DNA of 64,000 nucleotides from Mytilus californianus (GCF_021869535.1 NW_026262593.1:54002001-54066000), one strand, 5' to 3'; positions 2,625 to 63,962 are shown, counted from the first letter of the stretch. The notes: generated from the sequence alone by a model not told the origin. A program made the numbers and translations.

Positions 2625-2722
2625 CATAGTTATATAAGCGGAAGATTTGGCTAGCCATAAAACCAGGTTCAACCGACCTATTTTTTCTCAAAATGTTCTG
2701 TACCAAGTCAGGAATATGACAG
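2625..2722 (+). ncRNA. Degenerate type-P5 twister ribozyme (subfamily A2), predicted inactive
   Basis: Same layout as 63869-63962, but the catalytic G is replaced by A (2642) and the T1 strand is GAT instead of GGT. Confidence 0.55.
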
Positions 2723-6019: not shown

Positions 6020-6690
6020 TAAAATTGAGAATGGAAATGGGGAATGGGTCAAAGAGACAACAACCCGAACATAGAGCAGACAACAGCCAAAGTCCACTAA
6101 TGGGACTTCAATGCATCGAGAAACTCCCGCACCCGGAGGAGTCCTTCAGCTGGTCCCTGAACAAATATGTATACTAGTTTAGTGATAACAAACGTCATTC
6201 TACACAAGAAACTCGAATTAAAAATCATACAAGACTAACAAAGGCCAGAGGCTTCTGACTTGGGACAGGCGCAAAAATGCGGCGGGGTTAAACATGTTTT
6301 TGAGATCTCAACCCTCCCCCTATACCTCTAGCCAATGTAGAAAAAACAAACACACAACAATACGCACAGTAAAACTCAGTTTAAGAGAAGTCCAAGTCCG
6401 ATGTTAGAATAGGTAACAAAAGAAACTAAACAAAATGACAATAGTACATAATTTAACAAAGGACTACTAGCAGTAACTGACATGCCAGCTCCAGACTTCA
6501 ATTAAACTGATTGAAAGATTATGTCTTCATCATATGAATATCAAGCACAATCCCTCCCGTAAGGGGTTTAGTATTATGCAATCATAAAATATATGAGCAG
6601 AACATAACCCGTGTCATGCCAACAACTAGTTTTAGAATAAATGTGTTTAATTCCGATGCAAAGACCCTATAAGCTAATCAATATGAATGG
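6020..6690 (-). mobile_element. Dispersed repeat family C (twister-bearing)
   Basis: Homologous to 51420-51775 (opposite orientation) and to partial copies at ~38930-39160 and ~54315-54520. Confidence 0.8.
6243..6333 (-). ncRNA. Type-P5 twister ribozyme, family C
   Basis: Minus strand: P5 GGCTAGAGG/CCTCTGGCC; P2 CCC/GGG; catalytic G6316-A6315; T1 CCC/GGG; T2 GC/GT; P3 CGCA/TGCG; P4 CCTG/CAGA (one terminal mismatch); L4 T-CCC-AA-GT. Predicted cleavage T6290/A6289. Confidence 0.72.
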
Positions 6691-8058: not shown

Positions 8059-8945
8059 TCACTCTTCAATAAATGGTTTGGAATGTTCACGCATCAAAGA
8101 AACGATACCATTGTATCCTAGTTTTCTGGTAATTTATTTTGGTGGTAAAAGAGATTCACCAACACTGGCACGTATATAGTAATCTGCTCCTTCCGACAGT
8201 AACATTATGACTGTATCTATATTATCTTAAAAACAATCTATAAAAAAAACTCCAGAATTTCCTCTCTTATTAATGTATGCCTTATTGTCTAGATTCAGCT
8301 TTACTATATCTACATGATTCTTCTCACTAGCAATAAACAGGGGAGACGTTTCCTTATCTGTACACTGGTTAACGTCTGCCTTGTTGTCAAGCAACAATTT
8401 TTCTACACCTGCATGATTCTCCAGACGAGCAATAAAGGGTAGATTTTCCAGTATCTATACACTTGTTTATGTCTACATTGTTATCAAGTAACAGCTTTGC
8501 TATATCTACACAATTCTCCTGAAAAGCCATGAACAGAAGTAATATTTTACTATTTCCACACTTACTAATGGCTGCCGTGTTTGCAAGTAATATCTGTACT
8601 ATAACTTTTTGATTCTCCTTACAAGCATTAAACAAGGAAGATATTCCATCATTGTTACACTTAATACTTTCAGTCTGATTGTAAAGTCACAACCCTACAA
8701 GATACACATAATTCATATCACAAGCCGTGAAAAAGGGAGACGTTTTTTAGTCTGTACATTAATCAATGTCTACCGTCTACCTTATGGTCAAGTAACAGTT
8801 TTACCACATCGACATGATTCTGCTGACGAGCAACACACAGGGGAAATTCTCAAACATCTGTACAGTGGTTAACGTCTGCCTTGTTGTAAAGCAACAGTTT
8901 TACTACATCTGCATGATTCTGCAGACAAGCAATAAACAGTAGTAT
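8059..8945 (-). pseudogene. Exon 4, part d: decayed ankyrin tail (~8 units) and probable ancestral C-terminus
   Basis: Repeat-like peptides switch frames with several stops; the terminal segment reads ...DNIDTVIMLLSEGADYYIRASVGESLLPPK*ITRKLGYNGIVSLMREHSKPFIEE* (TGA 8059-8061). Confidence 0.65.
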
Positions 8946-10524
8946 CTGTACACTTATCAATGTCTACATTGTTATCTAGTAACAGCTTTACTATATCTAT
9001 ATAATTCTCTTGACAAGCAATAAACAGGGGAGATGTTCCTTCATCGTTACACTTGTTAACGTCTGCCTTGTTGTCAAGTAACAGTTTTACTATATCTAAA
9101 TTATCCTGTTGACAAGCAATAAACAGGGGAGATAATCCGTCATCTGTACACTTATCAATGTCTACATTGTTATCTAGTAACAGCCTTACTATATCTACAT
9201 AGTTCTCTTGACAAGCCATAAACAGGGGAGATGTTCCTTCATCGTTACACTTGTTAATGTCTGCTTTGTTGTCAAGTAACAACTTTACTTTATCTACATA
9301 ATCATGTTGACATGCAATATACAGGGGAGATGATCCAGTATATCTACACTTATTAATGTCTGCTTTGTTGTCAAGTAACAGCTTTACTGTATTTACATGA
9401 TTCTCCAGACAAGCGATAAACATGGGAGATTCTCCATCCTCTCTGCACACATTAATGTCTGCTTTATTGGTAAGTAACAACTTTACTATATCAACATCAC
9501 CCTTCTGACAAGCAATATACAGGGGAGATGTTCCATTATTTTTACACGTATTAATGTCTGCTTTCTTGTCGAGCAACAGTTTTATGACATCTGCATGATT
9601 CTGTTGACAAGCAATAAACAGGGGAGATACTCCGTCATCTGTACACTTATCAATGTCTACATTGTTATCTAGTAACATCCTTACTATATCTACATAATTC
9701 TCCTGACAAGCAATACACAGGGGAGATGTTCCTTCATTGTTACACTTGTTAATGTCTGCTTTGTTGTCAAGTAACAACTTTACTATGTCTACATCACCCT
9801 TCAAACAAGCAATATACAGGAGAGATGTTCCATTATTTTTAAACGTATTAATGTCTGCCTTCTTGTCAAGTAACAGCTTTACTATATCAAAATGTTCCAT
9901 CTGACAAGCAACATACAGGAGAGATGTGCCATCAATCCTACACTTATTTATATCTGCTTTGTTGTCAAGTAACAACTTTACTATATTTATATCACCCTTC
10001 TGACAAGCGATATACAGTGGAGATGTTCCATTAATTTTACACGTATTAATTTCTACACTGTTGTCCAGTAACATCTTCACTACATTAAGATGTTCCATCT
10101 GACAGGCTATTAACAGGGGAGATGTTCCATCGATCATACTCTTATTAGTGTCTGCCTTGTAATCAAGTAGCAGCTTTACTATACCTATATGATTATTCTG
10201 ACAAGCAACATACAAGGGAAACATTGCATAACCATTATAATTATTAATGTCTGCCTTATTTTCAAGTAACAGCTGGACTATAGCTTCATGATTCTCTTGA
10301 CAAGCAATATCTAGAGGAAGGCTGTTCCATTTTGTACACTTGTTAGTGTCTGCATTGTTTATAAGTAACAGTTTTACAATATCTACATGTTTGTTCTTAC
10401 AAGCAATATATAGGGAAGATATACCCATGTTTATGTCTGCCTTGTTTTTAAGTAACAGTTTTACTATATCTATATGATTCTTCTGACAAGCAATAAACAG
10501 AGGAGAAATGCCCATCTTGTACAC
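8869..10524 (-). CDS. Exon 4, part c: ankyrin repeat array (~16 units) after a 1-nt frameshift
   Basis: ACA-AGATGGGC-ATT has 8 nt where the repeat consensus has 9; the repeats continue in the new frame until a further deletion frameshift at ~8940. Confidence 0.9.
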   Translation of the reverse strand: MYKMGISPLFIACQKNHIDIVKLLLKNKADINMGISSLYIACKNKHVDIVKLLLINNADTNKCTKWNSLPLDIACQENHEAIVQLLLENKADINNYNGYAMFPLYVACQNNHIGIVKLLLDYKADTNKSMIDGTSPLLIACQMEHLNVVKMLLDNSVEINTCKINGTSPLYIACQKGDINIVKLLLDNKADINKCRIDGTSLLYVACQMEHFDIVKLLLDKKADINTFKNNGTSLLYIACLKGDVDIVKLLLDNKADINKCNNEGTSPLCIACQENYVDIVRMLLDNNVDIDKCTDDGVSPLFIACQQNHADVIKLLLDKKADINTCKNNGTSPLYIACQKGDVDIVKLLLTNKADINVCREDGESPMFIACLENHVNTVKLLLDNKADINKCRYTGSSPLYIACQHDYVDKVKLLLDNKADINKCNDEGTSPLFMACQENYVDIVRLLLDNNVDIDKCTDDGLSPLFIACQQDNLDIVKLLLDNKADVNKCNDEGTSPLFIACQENYIDIVKLLLDNNVDIDKCTDTTVYCLSAESCRCSKTVALQQGRR

Positions 10525-13500
10525 TTATCAATGTCTGCTTTGTTTTCAAGTAACAGTTTCACTATATACACATGGTTATTCTGACAAGCAGTTAACAAGG
10601 GAGAGTTTTCAAAATAATTACTATTATTAATGTCTGCCTTGTAGTCAAGTAACAGTTTTACTATATCTACATGATTCTTCTGACAAGCAATGAATAATGG
10701 AGATATACCATTATATATACACTTATCAATGTCTACCATATTGTCAAGTAAAATCTGTACAATAGCTTTATGATTCTCCTGAGAGGCAATATAAAGGGGA
10801 GATTTTCCATCATATGTCAAGTTATTAATGTCTGCCGTGTTGTTCAGTAACATTTTAACAATCGCTCCATGATTTTTCTTACACGCAATAAACAGGGCAG
10901 ATTTGCCACCAAAATGACGAATATTAATGTTTGCCTTATTGTTTAGTAACAGTTGTACTACCTCTACATGATTCATCTGACAAGCAATAAATAAAGGAGA
11001 TATTCTATAATATTTACACTTATTAATGTCTGCATTGTTGTGAAGTAACAGCTGTACAATAGCTTCATGATTATTTTCACACGCAATAAACAGGGGAGAT
11101 ACTCCATCATATTTACACTTATTAATGTCTGCTTTGTTATCAAGTAAAAGTTTAACTATATTTACATGATTCTCCTTGCAAGCAATAAATAATGGAGATA
11201 TTCCATTATATTTACACTTATTAATGTCTGCATTGTTATCCAGTAACAGTTTTACTATATCTAAAAGATTTTTCTTACAAGCCATTAACAGGGGAGATAT
11301 TCCATCATATTTACACTGATCAATGTCTGCCTTGTTGTCAAGTAATAACTGTACCATTGTTCTATGATTCTCTTGACAAGCAACATATAGGGGAGATATT
11401 CCATCATATTTACACTTATTTATGTCTTCCTTGTTGTCCAGTAACAGCTTTACTTTATCGATTTGATTCTCCCGACAAGCACCAAACAATGGATATGGTT
11501 CATCGTCTGTCCTCTTATCGATTTTTGCCTTGTGGTCGAGTAACAATTTCACTATAGGTACATGATTATTCTTACTAGCAATACACATGGGAGATGTGCC
11601 ATCATCTGTACATTTATTAATGTCTGCCTCATTGTCTAATAACAGCTTTACTATATCTACATGATTCGTCTGACAAGCAATAAACAAGGGAGATTTTCCA
11701 TCATCTAAACACTTATTCATATCTGCCTTGTTGTCAAGTAACAACTTTACTACATGTTCCCAATTTTCAAGACATGCAATAAATAGGGGAGATATTTCAT
11801 CATATTTACACTTATTAATGTTCGCCTTGTTGTCAAGTAATAGCGTTAATATATTTATATGATTATTCTGACAGACGATAAACAGGGGTGATGTTCCATC
11901 ATCTGTACATTTATTAACGTCGGCCTTGTTGTCAAGTAACATCTTCACTATATCTATATTGTTCATCAGACAAGCAATATACAGAGGAGATATTCCGTCT
12001 GCATTACACTGATTGATGACTGCACTGTTGTGAAGTAACAGCCTAACTATATCTACATAATTATTCTGACAAGCAATATATAGGGGAGAGCTGCAGTCAT
12101 ATCTACACTTTTTAATGTCTACTTTGTTGTCAAGTAACAGCTTTACTATATCTACATGATTATACTGACAAGCAACATATAGGGGAGAGCTGTAGTCATA
12201 TCTACACTTGTTAATGTCTACTTTGTTGTCAAGTAACAGCTTCACTATATCTACATGATTATTCTGACAAGCAACATACAAGGGAGAGGTGTTATCAAGT
12301 GAACACTGATTTACGTCTGCCTTGTTATCAAGTAACAGCTGTACTATATCTGAAAGATTATTCTGACAAGCAATAAACAGGGCAAATTTTTTATCATCTG
12401 TGCACTGATTAACGCATGCCTTGCTGTCAAGTAACATATTTACTACGATTACATGATTATTCTGACAAGCAGTATATAGGGGATATGTGCAGTCATATCT
12501 ACACTTGTTAATGTCTACTTTGTTGTCAAGTAACAGCTTTACTATATCTACATGATTATTCTGACAAGCAACATACAGGGGAGAGGTGTTATCAAGTGTA
12601 CACCGGTTTACGTCTGCCTTGTGGTCAAGTAACATTTTTACTATTCCTATATGATCCTTCTGACAAGCTACATACAGAGGAGATGCGCCTCTATCTGTAC
12701 ACTTATTAATGTCTGCCTTGCTGTTTAGTAACAACATTATTATATCTTGATACCCTTCCTCACAAGCAATAAACAGAGGAGAGGTGCCGTCATATCTACA
12801 CTTGTTAATATCTACATTGTTGTCAAGTAACAGCTTAACTATATCTAAGTGATTTTTCTGACAAGCAAAAAACAGAGGAGATGTTTTATCATTTGTACAC
12901 TTATTAATGTCTGCATTTTTATCAAGCAAAACATTTATTATATCTTGATACCCTTCCTGACAAGCAATAAACAGAGGAGATGTGCCATCATATCGACACT
13001 TGTTAATGTCTGCATTGTTATCAAGTAACAGCTTTACCATATCTACATGATTATACTGACAACTATTAAAAAGGGGGGATGTACCATCGATTGTACTTTT
13101 ATTAATGGCTGCCTTTTTGTTAAGCAACAGCTTTACTATATCTACATGATTCCTGTGACAAGCAATAAAGAGGGGAAATATTCCATTATATTTACACCTA
13201 TTAATGGCTGCCTTTTTTTCAAGCAACATCTTTACTATATCTACATGATTCCTGTCACACGCAATAAATAGAGGAGATATCCCATCATAATTACACATAT
13301 TAATGTCTGCCTTTTTGTCTAGTAACAGCTTTACTATTTCTACATGATTCCTCTGACAAGAAATAAGCATGGGAGATATTCCGTCATCTTTACACTTATT
13401 GATGTCTGCCTTATTGTCAAGTAACAGCTTCACTATATCTACATGATTCTCCTGACAAGCAATGAACAAGGACGATGTTCCATCGTTCGCACACTTATTA

Positions 13501-24974: not shown

Positions 24975-25200
24975 AGGGCGACTGGCACACAAGTGAGAAA
25001 TTTAGCTATCTATAAAATCAGGTTTAATTCGCCATTTCGTCATAAGAAAATGTCTGTACCAATTCAGGAAAGAACAGTTGTTTTTCATTCGTTTGGTGTG
25101 TTTGAGTTGTTGATTTTACCATTTTATAACGGCCATTCCGTTTTGGATTTCCCTTGCAATTCGGTATTTTTGTTATGCTACTTTTGTTCTACTGTAGGTT
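24975..25200 (+). repeat. Family A repeat with degenerate twister
   Basis: Homologous to 41151-41350; T1 strand is AAT and T2 is GC/TT, so both pseudoknots are broken. Confidence 0.65.
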
Positions 25201-36589: not shown

Positions 36590-37270
36590 TAAAACGTAAA
36601 GTAATAAAAATACCGAACTCGAAAGGAAATTTCAAACGAAAAGTTCCTTATCAAATGACAACCTCCAAAGCTTAAACACACCAAACGAATGGAAAACAAC
36701 TGCCATATTCCTTACTTTGTACAGGCATTTCCTATAGAAAATGGTTGATTAAGCCTGGTTTTATAGCTAGCTAAACCTGTCACTTGTATGACAGTGATAA
36801 TTCCTTTATATTGACAACAATGTATGAGCAAAAAATCAAAGACATAATAAGTAATAATTTGTCTCATTTGTGTGACATCGTAACAATTGTAAAAAAAAAA
36901 AAACAGTGGTTGGTAAATTCTGTAAATGTTTTGTACATATCCCGGAGTTTTGCAACGCAAACAATACATTATGCGTTTTCTCGTTGTTGAAGGGAGTAAC
37001 TTTTTCAAGAAAAAAAGTAAAATCGCAAAAATACTGAACTCCGAGGACAATTCAAAAAGGAAAGTATCTAATCAAATGGCAAAATCAAAAGCTCAAACAC
37101 ATCAAATGTATGGATAACAACTGTCATATTCCTGACTTGGTACAGGCATTTTCTTATGTAGAAAATGGTGGTTTGAACCTGGTTTTATAGCTAGCTAAAT
37201 CTCTCAGGTGTATGACAGTCGCATCAAATTCCATTATATTGACAACGATGAGTGAACAAAACAAACAGAC
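36590..37270 (-). repeat. Two tandem family A copies, each with a degenerate twister
   Basis: Copy at ~36698-36795 has catalytic G>C (36779) plus L4/P4 changes; copy at 37117-37222 has T1 GAT and a P2 mismatch. Equivalent sites are 424 nt apart. Confidence 0.75.
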
Positions 37271-40533: not shown

Positions 40534-41360
40534 GTTCATCTCAGTACCAGAATCTATGACAAACGAGACGATTTTAGTTTTGAAAGTATCAATTTCCCCC
40601 ACCTCAGTAGCAATATACCAACTTCACCTGTATATACATTTCCCAACTTATTCGGTATTCAAGCGCTAACAGCTGCTACTCACACTTTGTTAAACGTCAA
40701 CAGTGTCTTAGCAGAAAATTGATGAACCAATGATATGTCAAGGAACATCTCGTCTTTTTTCTAAAAAATGTTCAATAGTGTTCTTTTATTTGTCTTTGTA
40801 AATTATTACTTTTACTGTTAAGTCTATTTTTGGTAATATTGATTTGACGTGGCTTGGTACTTATACATTCCGTCATTGTGTTATTGTGCTATTGTAAATT
40901 CTTGTATTCTTGTCTTTCGTTTTTGCTTGTGTGCTTTGTTTAAATGCCTTTTTATTTTTCTTTGGCGCATTTGTTTGTTTTATAGTGATTAACACAATTT
41001 TGAATGCTGTACCTTTATTTTTTACATTTTTACCTGTTATGGCTGTTTGTTTTATTCAATGTTGAATGCTGTACCTTTATTTTTGACATTTTTACCTATT
41101 ATGGCTGTTTGTTTTATTTACACATCGTTGTCAATATAATGGAATTTTATGCGACTGTCATACAAGTGAGAGGTTTAGCTAGCTATAAAACCAGGTTTAA
41201 TCCACCATTTTCTACATAAGAAAATGTCTGTACCAAGTCAGGAATACGACAGTTGTCATCCATTCGTTTGATGTGTTTGAGCTTTTGATTTTGCCATTTG
41301 ATCAGGGACTCTCCGTTTTGCATTTTCCTTGGAGTTCAGTATTTTTTTTTATTTAACTTT
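40534..41360 (+). mobile_element. 5'-truncated PLE-type retroelement (family A): RT C-terminus plus 3' region with twister
   Basis: VHLSTRIYDKRDDFSFESINFPHLSSNIPTSP...KRQQCLSRKLMNQ followed by the same 3' sequence as 17430-17990 (minus); the array unit is continuous across the insertion. Confidence 0.85.
41151..41256 (+). ncRNA. Type-P5 twister ribozyme, family A
   Basis: P5 GCGACTGTCATA/TACGACAGTTGT (1 mismatch); P2 TC/GA; G41170-A41171; T1 ACC/GGT; T2 AC/GT; P3 CATTTTCT/AGAAAATG; P4 TCTG/CAGG. Predicted cleavage T41198/A41199. Confidence 0.72.
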
Positions 41361-42148
41361 TTGTAAATTTTTCTTTGAAATCACGTTTTCTAAAAAGAAA
41401 TAAGAAGAAAATTCTTTTGATACTACAGGAGGAAATTAAATAGGCTTTAATCTGGGGCGTTGAAAAATAAAAGGAAATCAGATCAAAAAAGACAAAGACT
41501 GATTAAATTCTAAACATTTTAAACTCGATTATTGACATTGACCCTCATCTTGCTCTCAAAGAGATTACCATGATTGTTACTTTTAGTTCCCTACCAATTA
41601 GTTTTGTTTGTGGTGTTGTTTGGTTCTATTCGTTCCATTTAGGATTATTAAGTAGTCAATATAAATTGGAAATATATTGTAATGTGAAATTTGTAAAACA
41701 AAAGTTGAATTACATTTTCTGTAAAGAAATAAGAAGAAAATGCTTTAGCTAATGCCAGGGGGAAATTGAAAAGGCTCAACACTATCGTACTGAAAACTAA
41801 AATGAAATAATTCATTAATGAGATCAAAACAGACAAAGACTGACAAAATTCTAAAGAAAAAAACCTCGATAATTGACATTGACCCTAATCTTGCTCTCAA
41901 AGAGATTACCATAATAATAGTGTTATCTCAATTTACCTCGACACAGTATATTGGCAGCTTTAAATTTAATATACATGTATTTACTCATGACAAAATAACG
42001 ACAAAGACAGTAACAACAACAACAGAAAAACAAATTAAGAAAATAAACAAATAAACAGAAAAGCAAAAAAGGACCCCTGCTAGCGGAACAAGTTTTATCG
42101 ACCGGATTGTTTTACATGTCTTTTTTTTACTTAGAAATAACCTTCAAT

Positions 42149-51434: not shown

Positions 51435-51526
51435 GGCTAGAGGTATAGGGGAAGGGTTGAGATCTCACAAAACATGTTTAACCCCGCCGAATTTTTGCGC
51501 CTGTCCCAAGTCAGGAGCCTCTGGCC
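51435..51526 (+). ncRNA. Type-P5 twister ribozyme, family C, catalytic G apparently mutated
   Basis: All helices match 6243-6333 with a perfect P4 (CCTG/CAGG), but GGGGGAGGG reads GGGGAAGGG (A51452). Confidence 0.62.
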
Positions 51527-52537: not shown

Positions 52538-52637
52538 AACTGTCATATTCCTGACTTGGTACAGGCATTTTCAAATGTAGAAAATGGTTGATTGAACCTG
52601 GTTTTATAGCGCTAAACCTCTCACTTGTACGACAGTC
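52538..52637 (-). ncRNA. Type-P5 twister ribozyme, family A, intact
   Basis: Same as 53509-53608 except at the unpaired nucleotide between P2 and T2 and in the P3 loop. Predicted cleavage C52594/A52593. Confidence 0.75.
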
Positions 52638-53508: not shown

Positions 53509-53608
53509 GACTGTCGTACAAGTGAGAGGTTTAGCGCTATAAAACCAGGTTCAATCCACCATTTTCTATATTTGAAAATGCCTGTACCAAGTCAGGAATA
53601 TGACAGTT
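53509..53608 (+). ncRNA. Type-P5 twister ribozyme, family A, intact (best copy)
   Basis: P5 GACTGTCGTA/TATGACAGTT; P2 TC/GA; G53526-A53527; T1 ACC/GGT; T2 AC/GT; P3 CATTTTC/GAAAATG; P4 CCTG/CAGG; L4 T-ACC-AA-GT. Predicted cleavage C53552/A53553. Confidence 0.78.
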
Positions 53609-63868: not shown

Positions 63869-63962
63869 TTGCTAGATAAGCGGGAGGTTTGGCTAGCCAT
63901 AAAACCAGGTTCAACCCACTATTTTTTCTTAAAATGTCCTGTACCAAGTCAGGAATATGGCA
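63869..63962 (+). ncRNA. Type-P5 twister ribozyme, subfamily A2
   Basis: P2 CC/GG; G63884-A63885; T1 ACC/GGT; T2 AC/GT; P4 TCCTG/CAGGA; palindrome TGGCTAGCCA; P5 weakened. Predicted cleavage C63912/A63913. Confidence 0.65.

Follow-up and report, generated by a model that had tools for sequence, protein, structure and literature searches.

Palindromic segments at the P1 position of a candidate twister-like motif in a repeat of Mytilus californianus

Stem P1 of twister ribozymes has been treated as a conserved yet passive stem and, to our knowledge, natural twisters have been described as monomeric. A repeat in a 64,000-nucleotide stretch of Mytilus californianus DNA (NW_026262593.1:54002001-54066000, hereafter the window) raises the question of what occupies the P1 position when the two P1 strands are unable to pair with each other. 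A sequence-only reading of the window had placed two palindromes at this position, and had proposed that copies of the repeat pair palindrome to palindrome and that cleavage depends on the resulting dimer.

Layout of the twister-like motif

The segment at 53532-53551(+) and 10 further copies in the window carried a twister-like motif of the type-P5 permutation without a P1 stem. Two palindromes (pal1 and pal2) stood at the place of P1, after the T1' strand and before the predicted cut site, and the spacing from T1' to the predicted N^AA was 21-25 bases. In the copy at 53.5 kb (53521-53560, AGTGAGAGGT TTAGCGCTAT AAAACCAGGT TCAATCCACC), the order was TAGCGCTA (53532-53539), then TAAA, then AACCAGGTT (53543-53551). 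All motifs quoted in the sequence-only reading were located at their places, among them the TTGAGATCTCAA..AACATGTT pair found by motif search at 6290-6311(-), and the search added a further TAGCTAGCTA at 36764(-) and a C copy at 51458-51479(+). The pal1 and pal2 patterns had 0 occurrences in 100 shuffles of the window, and the most conserved block of the repeat, CTGTACCAAGTCAGGAA in the P4 hairpin, occurred in 12 window copies versus 0.15 expected. The palindromes had been described as intact in the listed copies, which held for most of them but not for the listed copy at 17.6 kb, where a single mutation breaks pal2. Single mutations breaking pal1 or pal2 were present in the 17.6, 25.0, and 36.7 kb copies, as expected of dead copies.

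Alignment of the copies separated subfamilies A (17.5, 25.0, 36.7, 37.1, 41.2, 52.5, and 53.5 kb), B (2.6 and 63.9 kb), and C (6.2 and 51.5 kb). The 52.5 and 53.5 kb copies form a head-to-head inverted duplication with arms 98% identical, and were counted once because they derive from one recent event. Between 25 and 45% of RNA reads carried TA after 53535 and 52610, so we took TAGCTAGCTA as the main (commoner) form of pal1 and TAGCGCTA as the same form with the central TA deleted. Coordinates of all features are collected in Table 1.

Table 1. Palindromes and helical elements of the twister-like motif in the window
Feature	Positions	Strand	Basis
pal1, TAGCGCTA (central-TA deletion form of TAGCTAGCTA)	53532..53539	+	motif search; covariation; predicted self-duplex
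pal2, AACCAGGTT, odd palindrome with central A	53543..53551	+	motif search; predicted self-duplex
pal1 and pal2, inverted duplicate copy, TAGCGCTA..AACCAGGTT, identical 20-mer	52595..52614	-	motif search
pal1 TAGCTAGCTA and pal2 AACCAGGTT, long A copy, element about 40535-41365	41176..41197	+	
pal1 TAGCTAGCTA (at 37188) and pal2 AACCAGGTT, A copy	37176..37197	-	
pal1 intact (TAGCTAGCTA at 36764), pal2 mutated (AACCAGGCT), A copy	36751..36773	-	
pal1 intact (TAGCTAGCTA at 17589), pal2 mutated (ATATCAGGTT), long A copy 17473-18286	17577..17598	-	
pal1 broken (TAGCTATCTA), pal2 AATCAGGTT, decayed A copy	25003..25024	+	
pal1 TGGCTAGCCA and pal2 AACCAGGTT, B copy	2648..2669	+	
pal1 TGGCTAGCCA and pal2 AACCAGGTT, B copy	63890..63911	+	
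pal1 TTGAGATCTCAA and pal2 AAACATGTTT, C copy, near-canonical twister core	6290..6311	-	
pal1 TGAGATCTCA and pal2 AAACATGTTT, C copy	51458..51479	+	
P5 5' strand GACTGTCGTA, pairs with 53599-53608	53509..53518	+	MFE folds
P2 3' strand, GA, T1' (GGT)	53523..53530	+	RF02684 cGCA-GAGgG in C copy; GGU matches P4-loop ACC
Predicted scissile step C^A	53552..53553	+	homology only: N^AA position just before P2
P2 5' strand (TCC), T2' (AC), P3 hairpin (CATTTTC...GAAAATG)	53555..53580	+	RF03160 partial alignment; MFE (P3)
P4 hairpin CCTG-TACCAAGT-CAGG, loop with T1 and T2 strands	53581..53596	+	aligns with GUCCCAAGCC of Rfam twister models
P5 3' strand TATGACAGTT	53599..53608	+	MFE folds

The Rfam scan at the gathering threshold gave no match in the window, so the family is invisible to standard annotation. 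Weaker matches were obtained on short stretches with laxer filters. The alignment of the Twister-P5 model (RF02684) with the C copy at 6254-6320(-) covered all positions of the model (1-58 of 58) and scored 15.8 bits versus a threshold of 37.6. The score was lost in the P1 region only, where the 20-position P1 hairpin of the model faced 21 unpairable bases. The C copy read GGGG-GAGGG, UAA, CCCC, GC, and CCUG-UCCCAAGU-CAGA versus cGCA-GAGgG, UAA, UGCg, GC, and cCG-GUCcCAAGCC-CGg in RF02684, with the canonical U^AA of the C copies aligned to the UAA of the model. The twister-P1 model (RF03160) showed a partial match over P2-P3-P4 of the 53.5 kb copy, with 18.3 bits versus a threshold of 67.2.

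At the conserved L1/L4 nucleotides (GA-GGG, N^AA, GC, and CCAAG), the C copies had GAGGG, UAA, GC, and GUCCCAAG, and the A/B copies had GAGGU, C/UAA, AC, and GUACCAAG, with changes that were complementary across T1 and T2. T1 covaried as ACC/GGU versus CCC/GGG: the A/B copies combined the P4 loop UACCAAGU with T1' GGU and T2' AC, and the C copies combined UCCCAAGU with GGG and GC. The MFE folds of the A, A', B2, and C families showed the P3 and P4 hairpins inside a multiloop that P5 closes. P5 and P3 were wholly different in sequence among these families, yet the helices were recovered, with P5 strands that differed but remained complementary (GGCUAGAGG/CCUCUGGCC in C and AUGGCCAUA/UAUGGYCAU in B2). 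The phylogenetically conserved stem P1 was absent, and its two strands were unpairable in every copy by MFE and by the RF02684 alignment. The claim that the two strands are unable to pair mutually was borne out by the MFE folds of five copies, which never joined the halves. P2 of the A/B copies was weak and its register ambiguous (UCC/UGA with T2' AC, or CAC/GUG without T2).

Given the complementary T1 and T2 changes, the P5-open order, and the MFE helices, we accept a type-P5 twister layout for the putative ribozyme, in the order P5, P2', T1', P1 region, cut site, P2, T2', P3, P4 loop, and P5'. The type-P5 twister (Roth et al., 2014, reviewed in PMC5408937) shares with it the order of elements, the length of the P1 region, and the conserved nucleotides of the C copies. 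However, the motif has two self-complementary segments and no P1 helix, T1 has A-U and T2 has U-A in the A/B copies, where P2 is weak, and the setting is an animal retroelement rather than bacteria. With Rfam scores far below gathering, the motif is best called twister-like, a candidate ribozyme known here from its sequence.

Covariation and predicted pairing of the palindromes

The window alone held too few independent lineages, and more copies were therefore collected by two routes. A spurious ORF across the repeat led to nine proteins in one ENA assembly and from these to contigs, and a metagenome scan with a degenerate 21-mer gave 29 contigs. An nhmmer search then gave 63 matches, of which the 50 with at least 25 bits were taken as real copies. 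Another 90 loci from a pattern scan of viral contigs were rejected as chance occurrences, as nhmmer matched only a P4-like 16-mer in them.

The pal1 analysis set comprised 36 copies (17 distinct), drawn from the window and a small number of metagenome assemblies. The pair count was run on the 36 centre-aligned 10-mers. In a MAFFT alignment of the copies, the C/D families are displaced against A. Paired cells made up 87.1% versus 58.6 ± 4.0% in shuffles (0 of 500 reached the observed value). The covariation score was 0.796 versus 0.301 in shuffles (0 of 500), and did not exceed 0.156 when the partner column was slid. All five pairs varied on both sides, in agreement with the claim that palindromy is kept while the sequence changes.

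Eight founder forms of pal1 were distinguished, seven of them fully palindromic. The forms were TAGCTAGCTA (11 copies), TAGCGCTA (the 52.5/53.5 kb pair and L114), TGGCTAGCCA (2 copies), TGGCATGCCA (L123 and L126), TGAGATCTCA or TTGAGATCTCAA (8 copies), and, each intact in one copy only, AAGCTAGCTT (L108), TGAGCGCTCA (L125), and TGGGATCCCG (L110, singly mutated in L098 and L116). The D form is written (U)GGGAUCCC(G) and requires a U·G as its outer pair. A minimal network of the founder forms contained seven mirrored, complementary double changes versus one uncompensated change, with a per-step chance of 0.005-0.11 and a joint chance of about 1e-9. Palindrome-preserving substitutions were thus in excess across the 36 copies, as the sequence-only reading would predict.

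The centre pair of pal1 was UA, AU, or CG, or had its TA deleted in one lineage, and the next pair flipped between CG and GC. Compensatory change at the centre and next-to-centre pairs occurred in three independent steps. Decayed copies carried uncompensated pal1 changes (TAGCTATCTA, TAGCTAGCAA, TAGATAGCTA, TAGTTAGATA, TAAGATCTCA, and TGAGATTTCC). Since the dead copies have such single changes, compensation belongs to the lineages that propagated.

The predicted self-duplex energies of pal1 were -10.9 (TAGCGCTA), -14.0, -16.0, and -18.0 kcal/mol, and those of pal2 were -6.8 (AACCAGGTT) to -8.2 kcal/mol. The monomer hairpins of both palindromes were predicted at 0 to -1.5 kcal/mol, with 0 kcal/mol for TAGCGCTA, consistent with the earlier statement that the palindromes are too loopless for intramolecular hairpins. 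From these predicted energies, pal1 would be expected to drive dimerisation by itself at low RNA concentrations in vitro, and pal2 would be marginal. The centre pairs covary but cannot form in a hairpin, where the loop would be 0 or 2 nt, so the sequences are best read as pairing between copies, whether these lie on separate transcripts or on a single one. The outer pair of D, complementary as U·G only, fits RNA pairing over DNA symmetry. The pattern of change points to selection, in propagated lineages, for pairing of the segment with a second RNA copy of itself, and the repeat RNA probably pairs copy to copy. Covariation and energetics together give good support to this pairing.

For pal2, A, B, and B2 shared AACCAGGTT, C and F had AAACATGTTT or TAAACATGTTTA, D had AACATGTT, and a single E copy had TAAAACCAGGTTTTA. 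All forms were palindromic, but the forms were few and the covariation thin. The proposed palindrome-to-palindrome pairing of copies is supported for pal1, through its covariation and duplex energies, and less so for pal2, which is weak and covaries little. In the E copy at L091:4010-4111(-), pal1 was not palindromic (GTAAAGGCAT) and pal2 was extended to TAAAACCAGGTTTTA (7+1+7). A change of AACC to AATC in pal2 was common to three decayed A copies (window 25016-25024, L091:9679-9782(-), and L108); it retains RNA pairing via a U·G wobble and is possibly a mere common C-to-T transition.

In the MFE fold of the A/B monomer, GGUUU (T1' and UU) paired with AAACC (the first half of pal2) and closed an 11-nt loop containing pal1. 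In the C monomer, a GGGUUGAG/UUUAACCC helix covered T1', the cut site, P2, and one half of each palindrome. The best full-length dimers from RNAcofold were domain-swapped, and in A copies pal1 was extended by GGUU/AACC in trans. This extension buries T1', so such a dimer would inhibit and not activate. A dimer with both pal1:pal1 and pal2:pal2 has a crossing topology, which lies outside what RNAcofold represents.

Host repeat and its transcripts

The host repeat resembles the tail of a Penelope-like element of the Naiad type. The copies in the window and contigs fit the 3' part of a 5'-truncated, RT-encoding element with the motif in its 3' untranslated tail. The 41.2 and 17.5 kb copies had about 830 nt in common and the same T-rich 3' end, about 200 nt from the twister, and the remaining window copies were 5'-truncated. 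In contig L092, an RT C-terminal ORF (...FRYIDDV...YDKRDDYNFEIINPPHLSSNIP...) ended about 600 nt upstream of the twister, and its nearest Atlas clusters had RVT_1 and HTH_animal and came from molluscs, rotifers, and nematodes. A SECIS_1-like match at 6531-6595(-), with 29.1 bits versus a threshold of 35, shared the strand of the C copy and preceded it by about 190 nt. By analogy, it would fit the selenoprotein-coding Naiad elements of clams, in which the SECIS directly follows the stop codon (PMC8557442). Naiads are described as having a C-terminal RT and no canonical hammerheads, and as inserting in partial tandems with adjacent inverted truncated copies; a twister goes unmentioned in that paper (PMC8557442). 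Among the papers searched, none tied a twister to bivalves or Naiads. Among the copies examined, no GIY-YIG domain and no full-length copy was seen.

Pfam gave no match on ORFs upstream of copies in the ENA contigs. Two of these ORFs, at L095:422-1452(+) upstream of an A copy (..YRYFKPFANESLFERPVYIS..), appear to belong to an unrelated repeat that served as insertion site for the twister element. In the window, three long ORFs (551, 1367, and 393 aa) at 8059-15944(-) contained about 55 tandem 99-nt (33-aa) repeats, which dominate the repeat-finder output; they seem to correspond to the giant ankyrin-repeat gene that the sequence-only reading had reported.

Closely spaced and inverted copies occur in the repeat. 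Tandem copies were considered as support for pairing between neighbours and rejected, because the 3-4 same-orientation neighbours at 340-421 nt were about as many as copy density predicts. The 36.7/37.1 kb pair had about 170 nt of unrelated DNA between its members, and the inverted pair at 52.5/53.5 kb had no junction at a palindrome. No second pal1 was found inside one element; TAGCTAGCTA was confined to twister copies, so a single unit offers no partner.

A minimal type-I hammerhead motif was also present in the window at 16444-16487(+) (CUGAUGAG...GACGAAAC), with the loopless palindrome ACGCGCGU as stem III. It scored 29.5 bits, just under the Rfam threshold of 34, and occurred as a single window copy about 1 kb from the long twister copy at 17.5 kb. 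Judged by its sequence, this motif is of the Penelope/retrozyme dimer type.

The repeat was enormously abundant in the DNA contigs of four organisms, and one raw RNA-seq run (X21) covered the repeats on both strands. Read ends in X21 did not pile up at the predicted site or elsewhere in the repeats, which is a weak test as most reads came from decayed copies inside other transcripts. This pattern is weak evidence against efficient constitutive cleavage, and is equally expected if the transcribed copies are mostly dead or if single embedded copies are silent. We also considered 5' truncation points of genomic copies as a footprint of cleavage and rejected them, since none of the 5'-truncated copies began at the predicted cut site (+1 A). 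Two independent 5'-truncated C/D copies, L104:674-825(-) and L112:1500-1608(+), began at pal2 (..AACATGTTTAACCCC), 9-10 nt upstream of the predicted cut.

Proposed self-association at the P1 position and its bearing on cleavage

The sequence-only reading drew on two precedents that proved correct, namely that the hammerheads of Penelope-like elements cut as dimers (PMC6765202) and that twisters without P1 are active (PMC5408937, PMC11662667). A twister without P1 keeps near wild-type activity (PMC5408937), as in the P1-less mini-twister (Kosutic et al., 2015, via PMC5408937), and in the CHiTA survey of natural twisters P1 imperfections were without effect (PMC11662667). The literature view is of a stem that is conserved and dispensable for cleavage (PMC5408937, PMC11662667), so loss of P1 creates no need for a partner, and the claim that cleavage depends on the dimer was not supported. 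In the mini-twisters and the CHiTA cases the P1 strands are missing, whereas the repeat has about 22 extra bases that appear to be under selection for self-pairing.

The explanation we favour, at about even odds of being right, is a self-association element at the P1 position of a type-P5 twister-like motif, probably modulating its folding. The place of the P1 hairpin would hold two self-complementary modules, a strong pal1 (8-12 nt) and a weak pal2 (8-10 nt), and selection in propagating master copies would keep them self-complementary through the centre. Such self-complementarity implies that the partner is the same segment of a second RNA, on another transcript or in a neighbouring copy. 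From covariation and thermodynamics we infer that an RNA-RNA self-association element is built into the ribozyme at the place of P1. Its effect on cleavage would likely be modulatory and not obligatory, because twister chemistry does not need P1. In the monomer, bases beside the palindromes may be drawn into a competing helix that masks T1' and/or the cut site. The MFE folds predict this helix as GGUUU/AAACC in A/B and as GGGUUGAG/UUUAACCC in C. A partner that pairs with pal1 and pal2 might withdraw bases from it and so favour the active fold, a step that is the weakest link of the proposal.

A stricter version, in which pal1:pal1 and pal2:pal2 pairing makes each RNA the partner of the other's P1 strands and the monomer is silent, would explain why both segments are self-complementary in all subfamilies and why their 21-25 nt equal the P1 hairpin of the Rfam type-P5 model (20 positions). 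The dimeric hammerheads of Penelope-like elements give it a precedent, and the missing cleavage ends in bulk RNA would fit it. We nevertheless consider such an obligate dimer improbable: besides the dispensability of P1, whose imperfections were without consequence in about a thousand natural twisters, there are the weakness of pal2 and the crossing topology of the double pairing, and RNAcofold favours another dimer with T1' sequestered. The dispensability of P1 counts in favour of a linkage of two RNAs, or of two pseudo-LTR copies, that is independent of catalysis and serves packaging, template choice, or tandem or inverted insertion, with the twister cutting as a monomer regardless. Retroviral genomic RNA has palindromic dimer initiation sites, and pal1 resembles them as a short GC-containing palindrome in a retroelement RNA with a stable predicted homoduplex, displayed in the A/B monomer MFE in an 11-nt loop in the manner of a kissing loop. 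Unlike those sites, pal1 lies inside a candidate ribozyme and is known here from sequence and predicted energies. The strong pal1 duplex and the complex tandem and inverted insertions of Naiads would suit this linkage. However, the exact placement at P1, from T1' to the cut site, in all subfamilies would then be a coincidence, C copies have no closing stem presenting pal1 as a loop, and the inverted pair at 52.5/53.5 kb has no junction at a palindrome, and we regard the linkage as rather unlikely.

Two further readings dispense with pairing between copies. The palindromes, or GGUU/AACC with the outer pal1 pairs, might fold back as small intramolecular hairpins that substitute for P1 as a bulged stem with the central four bases in a loop. 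B and B2 can form UGG-CNNG-CCA within GGUU...AACC and the compensatory changes of the outer pairs would fit, but the predicted energies are only 0 to -1.5 kcal/mol, TAGCGCTA is left with two pairs only, and the centre and next pairs, which would be loop positions, were compensated in three independent steps, which makes this reading very unlikely. The least probable of the readings considered involves no RNA pairing: the palindromes would be sites of dimeric proteins co-evolving in each subfamily, or products of templated quasi-palindrome correction. Mirrored changes also keep two-fold symmetric protein sites, and the palindromes are identical on both strands. In contrast, nearly every pal1 position varies between close subfamilies, which is a better fit to any complementary pair, the D outer pair is complementary solely as U·G, and dead copies retain single changes that a correction mechanism would have removed.

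The proposed self-association at the P1 position can be set beside other retroelement ribozymes. The minimal hammerheads of Penelope-like elements have a short palindromic stem III and cut as dimers (PMC6765202; the minimal type-I forms of Cervera and de la Pena, 2014, and Lunse et al., 2017, as summarised there). The repeat likewise appears to have a candidate self-cleaving motif in what may be a repeated tail, with the closing helix replaced by loopless palindromes: hairpins of about 0 and duplexes of -6.8 to -18 kcal/mol were predicted, and the centre pair covaried. However, the ribozyme class is different and an A-rich linker joins two palindromes in place of a single one. The hammerhead needs helix III, whereas P1 is dispensable in the twister, so dependence on the dimer does not follow automatically from the parallel, attractive as it is as an analogy between Naiad-like twister palindromes and dimeric Penelope hammerheads. 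In Schistosoma, Perere-3 retrotransposons have functional twister variants at their 5' end (PMC8501958). There too a twister-class motif is carried by, and co-transcribed with, an animal retrotransposon. However, the Perere-3 twisters take P1 partly from the target-site duplication, whereas the motif described here lies inside the 3' tail, is of type P5, and is without P1.

A bolder possibility, which we hold to be doubtful, is that firing of the twister is gated by pairing of two copies and that Naiads have converged with other Penelope-like elements via a different ribozyme class. If this is true, the Penelope life cycle selects a two-copy requirement and not a ribozyme fold, and the RNA would be cut only when two copies meet, as tandem pseudo-LTRs or as two transcripts. 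With P1 replaced by segments that covary as self-pairing contacts, the motif would be the first natural twister built for inter-copy association. It would also give a second, independent case, after the Penelope hammerheads, of copy-number-sensing ribozymes in retroelement tails, and would supply a ribozyme to the Naiads, a clade reported to have none. With two ribozyme classes under the same constraint, the long-standing question of why Penelope-like elements carry ribozymes, and dimeric ones, would become directly testable.
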